NCBI GenBank assembly: GCA_964035545.1
Contig: CAXIUT010000110.1
Span: forward strand, 462-64,461
Direction: 5' to 3'
DNA from: Bugula neritina
Lineage: Eukaryota > Animalia > Bryozoa
Length of the DNA stretch: 64,000 nt
The notes beneath the pieces are model-generated. The model did not search any database and had not been told where the DNA came from. It saw only the letters and a list, made by a program, of their open reading frames with translations. Positions 25,601-28,600 of the stretch are shown here, one piece after another; position 1 is the stretch's first letter, and each line of letters opens with the position of its first letter. A program made the translations under genes and the position numbers.

Positions 25601-28600
25601 TAATTATATCATTTAAAATTAATTTTATTGATGTGATAAGCTAGCATCGCTAGCGCGCTACTGTTCTACAAACTGTAGGGTCAACGTCTGCACTCAAACA
25701 TCCGGGCTGCCTAAGCGTAAAGCCACAGCCAATGAGCAAGAGCGTGCTGTTACCTAATTAATGAATCTACAACTAGCAGTCGTTGCGTAGGCGAGAATCG
25801 CGTGATGCAATAACCTATTTGAGTGGAGCGTTATGCTAAACGCAACGCTGAATGCTCGATTAACTATTATGTATCCATTACACTACATTACTTTTACTGC
25901 TTGAATTAATTATGCTCAGTGCTAACTTTACATACATATATATATATATATATATATATATATATATATATATATATATATATATATATATATATATATA
26001 TATATATACCTCAATCTGTGGACAGCAGCTGTTTCGAGATTTGTCCCTTCATCAGCACAGAACAGAGTACCATGCCCCACACCTTTGCAATAGTAGAAAC
26101 TTATAGTTTTACTAAAGCATATTTAAAAGGTGTGTAAACCCAAACCAGAGTGCTCAAGTGACTCTAGCTAGGGGTCACCTAGGAGTCACGAGCATTGCAT
26201 AATGCTAGCAGCTTGAGTTTGTGACCATGGTGAGAGTGCTCAATCATTTAATATCATTGCTGAGCATTAAATGAGAGCATAATACCTCAATCTGTTGACA
26301 GCAGCTGTTTCGGGGTTTGTCCCCTCATCAGCACAGAACAGAGCATCATATATATATATATATATATATATATATATATATATATATATATATATATATA
26401 TATATTTATATATATATATTTATATATATATATATATATATATATATATATTTAAATATATCTTTACAAGCTAGCAATTTAATTATAAATAAATATACGA
26501 GAAACATTGTTGATTTATTATTTTATTAGGCAAAGTAATTATACTGGTATTTTGGGTATCACTGTGCCCATCTTCAGAGTAGCAATGAATGATCAAAATT
26601 CAAAAATTATTACGCTACGGTAAACACTATGCATGACACAAAGAATAGAGAGTGGCAGTTGTTGTAAATTATTGAAACTGAGGGAGATAATCTTGTTTTA
26701 TATATTACACAAGTAAAAACTTATACTGATTTCTTTGTATAAAAATAAATTAGAGTTGACAAAAATAGATATCCAAATATAAAAACAGCATGGATTAATG
26801 AAACAATGTGAGAGTTGAGTAGCCTGGAGCTTATTGGTATAGTTTTAGTGGTATGGAGTAACTTTGTTTATTAAGTTGCGGTTTTATTTGTTTAATGTAA
26901 AGAGCTTCGGCTACTTTTCGATGGTAGATTCCTTTAAATGACTGATTTAGAACTGTTACATTGTCTATTGATATGTTTCCATGATTAGTGGTGGAGATAT
27001 GTTGATATATTTTGGAATTGATGTCATGGCAGTGTTCATGTATCCTGTGTGATAGGCGACGTCCGGTTTCGCCTACATATGTTTGTTGACAGGTAGCTTC
27101 AGGGCAGGTTATTTTGTAGACTAGGTTGTGAATGTGTTCTTTATTGGTTTTATCTTTGAGATTAAAATGTGAACTTAAGGGGGTTCCTGTAAATAAAATT
27201 CGGGCATTGAGTTCATTTGGAAAAGAGTCTGCAATTATTTTATTGAGAGAATGGATTGGTTTTTTTCCTGCTACTCCTTTATAAGGCAGTTGAAGTAAAA
27301 TGTGTTTCTTGTTGCCTTTTTCACTGAGTAGTCCGTCACCAATGTTGTTAATCGTTTTCTCTATTACATATTTAGGGTACCTAACCATTTTTATGTTCAA
27401 AAGCATTTCGAATATAGTTCAGTTCTTGGGTCTTAAGTGTTGGAGTAGAACAGATTCTATTAGCCCTTAATACTAGTGACTTTAGTGTGCTTAGCTTCCA
27501 CATTTTTAGTGAGAAAGAGTTCCAATGTAAATATGTATCATTATGTGTTTCCTTACGGAATACTGTGGTTTCCACTGAGCTATTGTGTCGCAAAACTGTA
27601 ACATCCAGAAAAGAAAGTGATTTATTGGTTTCTAGTTCGTGTGTAAATTTTGTGTCAGGATAAAAATTATTAAGTGTGTTGAGTGTTGTGTAAAGTTGCG
27701 TTTATACCTCTGCTGAAAAAAGTACCGAGTTTAAGTTAATAATGCTTGCCCGGGTACCCCTTCATAGTCAAACTGAAACTCGTTGAAATCATATTGATGC
27801 GGTTGCTTACTTTCTGAAATTGTAATTTGACTCACATAATAGATACTTGATGCCCTTTGTAAACGTCGTGAATTAGTCAAGCGGAAAGCATAAAAGCGAT
27901 GATTGAGAAAGCGTAGGCTATATAATTATAACCGTATAAGTACGTTGTCTAATCGCCAAAGTAATAACTAAATAACGAAGTTTACAAGGAGTTATTACTC
28001 CTATTCTAAAATTGGCCGATTAAGTTATCACAGTACAAAAAATTCAACGAGTGGCTTTTACAATGCAATGCAACTCGGAAAAATTTCAACCCGGCCAAAT
28101 TGAATTTTTGACCGAAAATCGTGAAGGTATAAACGCAACTTTGATATAATCGGGGTCTTTTGTTGCAAATGTATCATCTATGTATCTTACCCAAGGTGAC
28201 ATTGAATTCAATTTTGGTATTACTTTTTGTTCCAGTTTTGTCATGAATATATTGGCAATTATTGGTCCCAGAGGAGACCCCATAGCAACACCATTTGTCT
28301 GTGTATAAATGATGTTGAAAGTAAAGTGAACTTGTTTTGTACAAAGGTTGAGTAAGTTTATCATTTTCTTCTTTGGTATAATTGTTTGGATTCGTTGTTT
28401 CTTATAAATATCGTTTATGATTGCTGAAATTGTGTAGTCAAGTGGTACAGAAGTAAAGAGGGAAATGACATCGAATGATATCAGTTGGTGGTTCGCTGGA
28501 ATATGAAGTTGTCGTATATATGTAAGAAATCTATCGGTTGATTCGATATTACATTCAGATTCACTAAGTGGTTTTTTTGCATTTTGGCCAAGTATTTCGC

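Follow-up and report, generated by a model that had tools for sequence, protein, structure and literature searches.

The 64,000-nt stretch of Bugula neritina DNA analysed here (contig CAXIUT010000110.1; hereafter, the window) carries on its minus strand, at 26007-26349, two direct copies of a type I hammerhead ribozyme motif, which lie 276 nt apart and bound a structured unit devoid of open reading frames (ORFs). Very probably, this locus is an old, decayed insertion of a family of non-autonomous, hammerhead-bearing retrozymes without long terminal repeats (LTRs). Judged by its sequence, the family is a new one within the known class of animal non-LTR retrozymes. We tentatively read the footprints left by its insertions across the genome as the first genomic read-out of retrozyme mobilization, whereby a (TA)n-specific reverse transcriptase (RT) and endonuclease of a Penelope-like element (PLE) would prime on a circular retrozyme RNA at the 4-nt AUAU that follows helix I, copy it in rolling-circle fashion when more than one unit is produced and usually abort early, with only the rare products longer than one unit founding the next generation; this reading may well turn out otherwise.

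Followed along the minus strand, the locus consists of (TA)n, a 53-nt partial unit, a 276-nt complete unit, the 14-nt tail CACAGAUUGAGGUA and again (TA)n (Table 1). Both hammerheads are held in a 68-nt direct repeat (26006-26073 and 26282-26349; 91% identity, 276-nt spacing), with the motif CUGAUGA-stem II-GAAAC-AGCUGCU-GUC running from 26331 to 26297 and again from 26055 to 26021. The spaced hammerhead pattern occurs at four sites in the window compared with 0.16 expected from shuffled sequences; two of the four are the retrozyme and the other two belong to a different element. The tail provides the 3′ strand of stem I for the last ribozyme and blends into (TA)n through UAU/AUAU microhomology. 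An earlier note on this DNA had proposed the pair of directly repeated minus-strand hammerheads, (TA)n on both sides (~25935-26006 and 26349-26449), a Penelope element about 100 bp away and the lack of a credible ORF, all of which are borne out: the PLE ends at ~26450 on the same strand, and no ORF longer than 23 aa lies within the unit, the listed ORFs of 50-72 aa passing through (TA)n. Its term '1.2-mer' is apt in that 1.2 units are present, and is better replaced by a 5′-truncated insertion of 1.2 units plus a fixed 3′ tail of 10-14 nt. The 276-nt length that it gave for the family unit had to be abandoned, since the family period is 271 nt and the window copy contains small insertions.

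A BLAST-type search with the 276-nt unit against its own 216-Mb genome returned 661 candidate places; 40 of these were scored and gave 70 matches at 89%-100% identity (92%-95% for the longer matches), many of which follow one another head-to-tail at an exact period of 271 nt. The exact hammerhead pattern has 377 matches genome-wide (201 forward, 176 reverse) versus none for the reversed control. The family is, as had been foreseen, multicopy, dispersed, partly tandem and resident in (TA)n. Its units have a GC content of 42%-43%, and the full ones share 97.8% mean pairwise identity; the window unit is 94% identical to them, that is, ~6% diverged from the family, and is therefore an older copy. 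Two subfamilies are present. Most members are shorter than one unit and carry one ribozyme each, and arrays reach about five units, with stretches of three to five exact 271-nt periods; the units of one array share private variants (L023, L027). One in-register array (L031; G000:C1:19014125-19014715, minus strand) comprises two full units from different subfamilies, and the core of its middle ribozyme is mutated to CAGAUGA, leaving 547 nt between the intact ribozymes. Propagation of this 547-nt 'heterodimer' as a unit of its own was considered and rejected, as L031 itself is the only match at 100% and all others reach at most 96%. At two further loci (L034, G000:C2:30137800-30139100; L036, G000:C2:33418100-33419000), retrozymes form inverted pairs ~100-150 nt apart, one head-to-head and one tail-to-tail, which recall PLE-type inverted arrangements.

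We examined 45 independent insertions, 25 from the BLAST list and a further 20 from the ribozyme pattern matches, chosen by position, one after another, along contig C1. All 45 terminate at ...GUC/CACAGAUUGA(G)(A/G)UAU, where the slash marks the cleavage site, 10-14 nt beyond that site, and in 42 the terminus is directly followed by (TA)n. The unit itself goes on as GAGAUAUUACGC, and the junction therefore falls within an AUAU microhomology of 2-5 nt. This terminus, at the end of stem I and the start of the AUAU stretch, spans exactly the 3′ strand of helix I, so that one complete ribozyme is contained in every insertion. The 5′ ends fall at more than 25 different unit positions, with small clusters at the TA-rich positions 12-16, 168-172 and 264-266. 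On the 5′ side, 29 insertions are flanked by (TA)n, eight by partly TA-rich sequence and eight by unique sequence; altogether, (TA)n or TA-rich DNA precedes 37 of the 45, and a coding body adjoins none of them. Of the 20 insertions in the positional sample, 18 fall short of a full unit, at 41-267 nt, and two exceed it. About one insertion in ten, the window copy included, is longer than one unit, which yields two ribozymes, and the first 100 ribozyme matches include ~6-8 loci with at least two ribozymes at unit spacing. Such a footprint reads as that of target-primed reverse transcription with frequent early termination. As the start of the cDNA invariably lies 10-14 nt beyond the cleavage site, the template must have been continuous across this site, either as a ligated circle or as an uncleaved multimer.

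When the sequences are threaded onto the canonical type I structure, with helix I open, both window copies display the complete core (C3 U4 G5 A6 N7 G8 A9, G12 A13 A14, A15.1-U16.1 and H17), and the invariant core is likewise present in the 377 genomic copies that match the exact pattern (0 for the control). In this threading, helix I is split by an internal loop into segments of 6 and 3 bp, helix II has 4 bp and an ACAAA loop, and helix III has 4 bp and a CUG loop. An intact sister copy (L009:1992-2054) forms 17 of 17 standard pairs with no non-pair, whereas each window copy contains one non-pair. In the upstream ribozyme (26297-26331), A replaces the C of the family at 26296, which turns the first pair of stem I into G2.1/A1.1, and in the downstream one (26021-26055), A at 26048 results in A10.1/C11.1 at the base of stem II, where the family has G; helix II of the latter also includes G:U pairs. 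Distinct lesions in the two ribozymes, together with a perfect ribozyme at the level of the family, had both been anticipated, and the sister copies and RNA-labelled contigs indeed carry C at 1.1 and G at 10.1. With a G/A mismatch beside the upstream cleavage site and the downstream G10.1-C11.1 pair lost, the window copy probably processes poorly now. Helix III is weak; as in further type I hammerheads from animals, an additional pairing is conceivable in which ACAGCUGCUGU of one ribozyme pairs with that of another, at 10 of 11 positions and with -14.1 kcal/mol.

All folds were made on natural copies rather than on a consensus. In circular form, the window unit has a folding energy of -86.1 kcal/mol (z = -4.75 versus dinucleotide shuffles) with 69% of its bases paired, and a natural family unit has a minimum free energy of -99.6 kcal/mol (z = -7.6; 72% of bases paired); the opposite polarity of the natural unit folds similarly and is without a ribozyme. 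The three hairpins named in the earlier note are recovered in the circular fold of the 276-nt unit. Of its picture of an 'almost fully base-paired (viroid-like)' RNA, the strong fold survives, 'almost fully' is somewhat generous and the viroid-like shape does not hold, as the structure is branched instead of a rod. The hairpin covariation, the lack of which that note had listed as a potential refutation, is present between the two subfamilies, which are set apart by two double-sided compensatory changes (U:A to C:G in one case, U:A to G:U in the other), several pairing-preserving wobble changes and a G:C pair inserted in the 181-199 hairpin; the top pair of helix II is G:U in one subfamily and G:C in the other.

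The natural unit is found in 20 public runs from nine studies. Four RNA-labelled runs, one of them an oligo-dT metatranscriptome, were compared with window positions 26008-26348, and in these contigs span the whole unit and cross the cleavage junction; a 220-nt contig of the oligo-dT metatranscriptome extends from unit position ~147 through the junction to ~91. The contigs carry the family letters at both lesion sites (26296 T>G and 26048 T>C on the plus strand) and are without the 4-nt insertion of the window copy, which shows no sign of being their source. The family is likely to be transcribed, to judge from these contigs; as the runs are assemblies, ends, strand, level and circularity are unreadable from them.

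The PLE family represented next to the retrozyme in the window is its likely helper, given the shared (TA)n target, the shared short terminus and the availability of intact PLE copies. The window element and the inverted copy next to it share an inverted repeat (26575-26765 and 29810-30000; 93%) and amount to a typical head-to-head PLE arrangement; a terminal direct repeat combined with an inverted 5′-truncated copy is a hallmark of PLEs (PMC8557442). One of its ORF fragments matches RVT_1, and the C-terminal fragment displays a GIY-YIG-like pattern, including YVGETGRR, and aligns over the Pfam-supported GIY-YIG segment of a homologue (36% identity, E = 8e-39). Support for the GIY-YIG domain comes only through a 36%-45% identical homologue, as Pfam gave no GIY-YIG match on the C terminus even at E ≤ 10 and a PDB sequence search found nothing; a homologue likewise supports the combination of RVT_1 with a C-terminal GIY-YIG domain. 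In the genome, the retrozyme co-occurs with autonomous PLEs: at least 150 matches to the endonuclease piece were found, the longest open frame measuring 811 aa, and sequence records include an 809-aa product that is 97% identical. All 22 PLE 3′ ends inspected lie in (TA)n. They take two alternative forms, ...UAUUUAUA and, 33 nt further, ...AAAGAUAUAU, the latter resembling the retrozyme terminus ...GAGAUAU, with a short AGATAT-like end common to both. At loci L038-L066, PLE termini ...CCUAUUUAUA and ...GUAAAGAUAUAU, 33 nt apart, both merge into (TA)n and look like the 30-40-bp 'tail' described for PLEs.

This PLE family has a conserved hammerhead-like core of its own, consisting of CUGAAGA, U, a 6-bp hairpin (GGGUAC-AGUG-GUACCC), GAAA and UAUCAGUGUA, in outline CUGAAGA...GAAA...GUA, with a poor helix I. 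It is located ~55-90 nt before the 3′ end in nearly all of 29 copies and, in the window, at 26541-26577 (minus strand) and ~30000-30040, GAAA having decayed to AAAA in the window copy. Other PLE families with minimal hammerheads are also present in the genome. Retrozyme and PLE copies appear to lie within a few kilobases of each other more often than their copy numbers suggest, an impression gained without statistics from the window and from C4:14352538-14355130, C2:24020255-24024607, C3:10893381-10897452 and C3:11209700-11213248 (L055); this proximity may reflect shared (TA)n hot spots.

In the mechanism that we propose, mobilization would start with transcription of a copy with at least two ribozymes, and the hammerheads would cut after GUC to release a monomer with 5′-OH and 2′,3′-cyclic phosphate ends, which a host RtcB-type ligase would circularize. 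The PLE would provide the RT and the GIY-YIG endonuclease; the latter would nick (TA)n, and the freed TATA-3′ end would pair with AUAU just beyond the ligation junction. The RT would then copy the RNA backwards through the hammerhead, sometimes for more than one circuit, the usual early stop producing the 5′ truncations.

Several results weigh against this interpretation of the locus and its family. Rfam hammerhead models report neither ribozyme copy in the window or in the trimmed region, at gathering thresholds or at E ≤ 10, and the model check suggested in the earlier note gave no hammerhead match; all that Rfam returned for the window were spurious matches of (TA)n to microRNA, Plasmodium and pestivirus models. 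Over the whole genome, RF00163 missed every retrozyme copy and produced one unrelated sub-threshold match. The best Rfam match of the intact sister copy is a partial one to RAGATH-1-hammerhead (15.2 bits, E = 1.8), which puts helix I, helix III and the core in the correct places; Hammerhead_II gives 12.1 bits, and the gathering score of the hammerhead clan CL00010 or RF00163 is not reached. The optimum for the isolated domain is an alternative pairing in which helix III is not recovered, with a z-score no better than that of shuffles. Covariation support is thin (2 of 87 pairs) because the family is young, and the exact hammerhead scan of metagenome contigs gave 0 loci and hence no relatives from other organisms for covariation. 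The four RNA-labelled runs are all assemblies, three of them RNA by guess, with possible DNA carry-over and a depth uncalibrated against a silent stretch. No target-site duplications were seen at 15 insertions with unique flanks, and comparison of the retrozyme unit with 29 copies of the PLE family revealed no similarity, bar one separate retrozyme insertion. The predicted membership of the hammerhead class rests on a descriptor-level match combined with genomic behaviour, and not on a curated model.

The same retrozyme family might instead be copied from an unprocessed linear transcript, monomeric or multimeric, which reads into the downstream (UA)n and pairs its tail with nicked (TA)n, in parallel with microsatellite-tailed SINE/LINE pairs (short and long interspersed nuclear elements), arrays arising from multimeric transcripts or later unequal crossing-over. 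We consider this possible, albeit doubtful. A linear template with a (UA)n tail would account just as well for the fixed 3′ end and the (TA)n that follows it, the eight of 45 insertions with a non-(TA) 5′ flank speak for it, and the mixture of subfamilies in array L031 is not predicted by rolling-circle copying of a single circle. Nevertheless, we favour a circular template over linear read-through, because an active terminal ribozyme would cut the tail off a linear RNA and because ~90% of the events shorten the element by 5′ truncation, which in a linear-only cycle would steadily drain the copies of more than one unit needed for processing into monomers, so that some step must regenerate them. 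The 271-nt arrays of three to five exact periods, with private variants shared among their units, also argue against the linear template, as does the largely circular state of retrozyme RNA in the animals studied (PMC7229834).

More distant from the circular-template scheme is the view that the unit is an ordinary satellite or minisatellite, spread by DNA-level duplication and endowed with a hammerhead-like motif of no role. Exact-period tandem units do occur and the ribozyme is without Rfam model support, yet the family is dispersed over all large contigs as single 5′-truncated pieces with one fixed end in (TA)n, which is a footprint of retrotransposition, and the integrity of all core nucleotides and 17 helix pairs in sister copies, along with the 377 exact motif matches versus 0 in the control, makes this view very improbable. 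Hardly credible is the idea that the unit is no more than a terminal part, pseudo-LTR or 3′ end, of a longer PLE with coding capacity, which the earlier note had named as a potential refutation, even though type I hammerheads occur in PLE pseudo-LTRs, a PLE is found at a distance of 100 bp and a 2026 preprint derives vertebrate retrozymes from PLE pseudo-LTRs (10.64898/2026.07.22.740005). There is no coding body between the repeats; the 3′ terminus of the unit itself closes all 45 insertions, with (TA)n coming straight after it in 42 and a coding body attached in none; the 29 copies of the neighbouring PLE family show no similarity to the unit other than the separate insertion mentioned above; and this PLE has its own, different hammerhead-like core.

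Table 1. Features of the retrozyme locus and the adjoining Penelope-like element (positions within the window).
Feature	Position	Strand	Evidence or remark
(TA)n microsatellite, RNA-5′ side, between retrozyme and PLE 3′ end	26349..26449	.	Sequence, repeat families
5′-truncated partial unit, 53 nt (~unit positions 224-276), containing the upstream hammerhead as far as cleavage site C26297	26297..26349	-	68-nt direct repeat; BLAST to unit, 91%
Upstream type I hammerhead; core CUGAUGA 26331..26325; stem II GGGG/CCCC; GAAAC; stem III ACAG-CUG-CUGU	26284..26343	-	Predicted cleavage 26297/26296
Complete retrozyme unit, 276 nt, cleavage site to cleavage site; non-coding, 42% GC, three long hairpins	26021..26296	-	92%-95% identical to the 69 other scored matches
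Downstream type I hammerhead; core 26055..26049	26008..26067	-	Predicted cleavage between 26021 and 26020
Fixed 3′ terminal tail CACAGAUUGAGGUA	26007..26020	-	Same terminus in 45/45 independent insertions
(TA)n microsatellite, RNA-3′ side; presumed target or priming site	25935..26006	.	Sequence, repeat families
Degenerate PLE, 3.3 kb, four ORF fragments	26450..29756	-	Same orientation as retrozyme, 100 bp upstream of it on that strand
PLE pseudo-LTR (terminal direct repeat)	26450-26545 and 29661-29756		
Inverted 5′-truncated copy of the 3′ end of the same PLE, ending in (TA)n	~29790..30140	+	

The element agrees with the descriptive definition of metazoan non-LTR retrozymes (PMC7229834, PMC7761336). 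Like them, it has a unit within the 150-450 bp range (271 nt), a GC content below 50%, no ORF, LTR, primer-binding site or polypurine tract, a single type I hammerhead in each unit, dispersed copies along with tandem arrays of modest length, a strongly folded monomer and co-resident PLEs. Known units measure 220-240 bp in Acropora millepora and ~350 bp in Mytilus galloprovincialis (PMC7229834), and retrozymes of 170-400 nt have been described as circular RNAs, with circularization by RtcB and PLEs as candidate mobilizers (Cervera and de la Pena, 2020; PMC7229834). Unlike these retrozymes, the present family has a unit sequence unrelated to any retrieved and short arrays (mostly less than one unit); it is strictly located in (TA)n, with the 3′ end fixed just past stem I and the 5′ end truncated as in LINEs, and it is known from the genome and assembled contigs, whereas the retrozyme RNA of the animals studied is largely circular. 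With PLEs, the family shares a type I hammerhead near the 3′ end, terminal direct repeats arising from insertions of more than one unit, the occurrence of inverted pairs, 5′ truncation and a bias towards (TA)n (PMC8557442), the last being a feature of the PLE family in this genome and of some PLE clades, for which (TA)n targets have been reported (Craig et al., 2021; PMC8557442). It differs from them in the lack of an RT/endonuclease ORF and in size (271 nt vs. ~3.3 kb), and its hammerhead is canonical (4-bp helix III, 4-bp helix II, internal loop in helix I), whereas the neighbouring PLE has only the CUGAAGA...GAAA...GUA core and a poor helix I. The idea that PLEs mobilize or give rise to retrozymes has already been published (PMC7229834; bioRxiv 10.64898/2026.07.22.740005).

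The type I topology and the weak or palindromic helix III are shared with satellite hammerheads of newts, schistosomes (Sm-alpha) and cave crickets; unlike satellite-DNA hammerheads, the copies found here are dispersed in microsatellites, not gathered in large satellite blocks. Penelope-like elements with hammerheads in their pseudo-LTRs were reportedly described by Cervera and de la Pena in 2014. A predicted self-cleaving hammerhead, a compact non-coding RNA and a proposed circular intermediate link the family to the LTR retrozymes of plants and to viroid-like circular RNAs. The hammerheads of the plant elements are of type III; these elements have LTRs, a primer-binding site and a polypurine tract, generate 4-bp target-site duplications and depend on Gypsy elements, and viroids replicate from RNA to RNA, without DNA copies. 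Unlike in viroid-like RNAs, only one polarity of the present unit carries a ribozyme. Our search of the open-access literature found no description of a fixed cDNA start beside the ribozyme, of LINE-like 5′ truncation of animal retrozymes, of a strictly microsatellite-targeted retrozyme or of a retrozyme from a bryozoan-like genome.

The window also contains a second, different hammerhead, within 23849-24719, composed of CUGAUGA, a hairpin, GAAAC, AAUAUU and GUA. It is of the minimal type found in PLEs, helix III having 2 bp and the loop being palindromic, and occurs twice (minus strand, 23952..23911; plus strand, 24616-24657) in a 212-nt inverted repeat, the arms of which are 100% complementary, separated by 447 nt and bordered on the outside by (TA)n. 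The sequence of the 447-nt spacer resembles the 3′-terminal part of an endonuclease ORF from a PLE, and the whole is probably a 5′-truncated PLE of another family with an inverted partial copy; the perfect identity of the arms could be an assembly artefact. Elsewhere in the genome, at L076 (G000:C1:14583300-14586200), a retrozyme fragment lies within an inverted-repeat structure bearing yet another minimal hammerhead (CUGAAGAUUGUGUACAUUCAAUGCAUAUGAAACUAGUAGUA); the genome therefore harbours several families of hammerhead-bearing elements. A 149-aa ORF at 21030-21479 of the window (plus strand) matches the Pfam ZNFX1 domain (E = 5e-13) and probably represents a host-gene exon.

The definition of animal retrozymes dates from 2020, and how they are mobilized is still a proposal, in which a circle would be copied, target- or RNA-primed, by the RT of a PLE or LINE. 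The biological weight of the window copy, a decayed relic, is low, and the interest lies in the family-level footprints: the family is young, small and placed in a simple target, and its junctions are readable base by base. It also offers a testable system, composed of a 271-nt RNA, an 809-aa candidate helper and a (TA)n oligonucleotide target. For automated annotation it matters that a type I hammerhead which is abundant and looks canonical escapes the current Rfam hammerhead models. If the proposed mechanism is true, the position of the priming patch would be a selected feature, securing a complete 3′ ribozyme in each new copy of the retrozyme.

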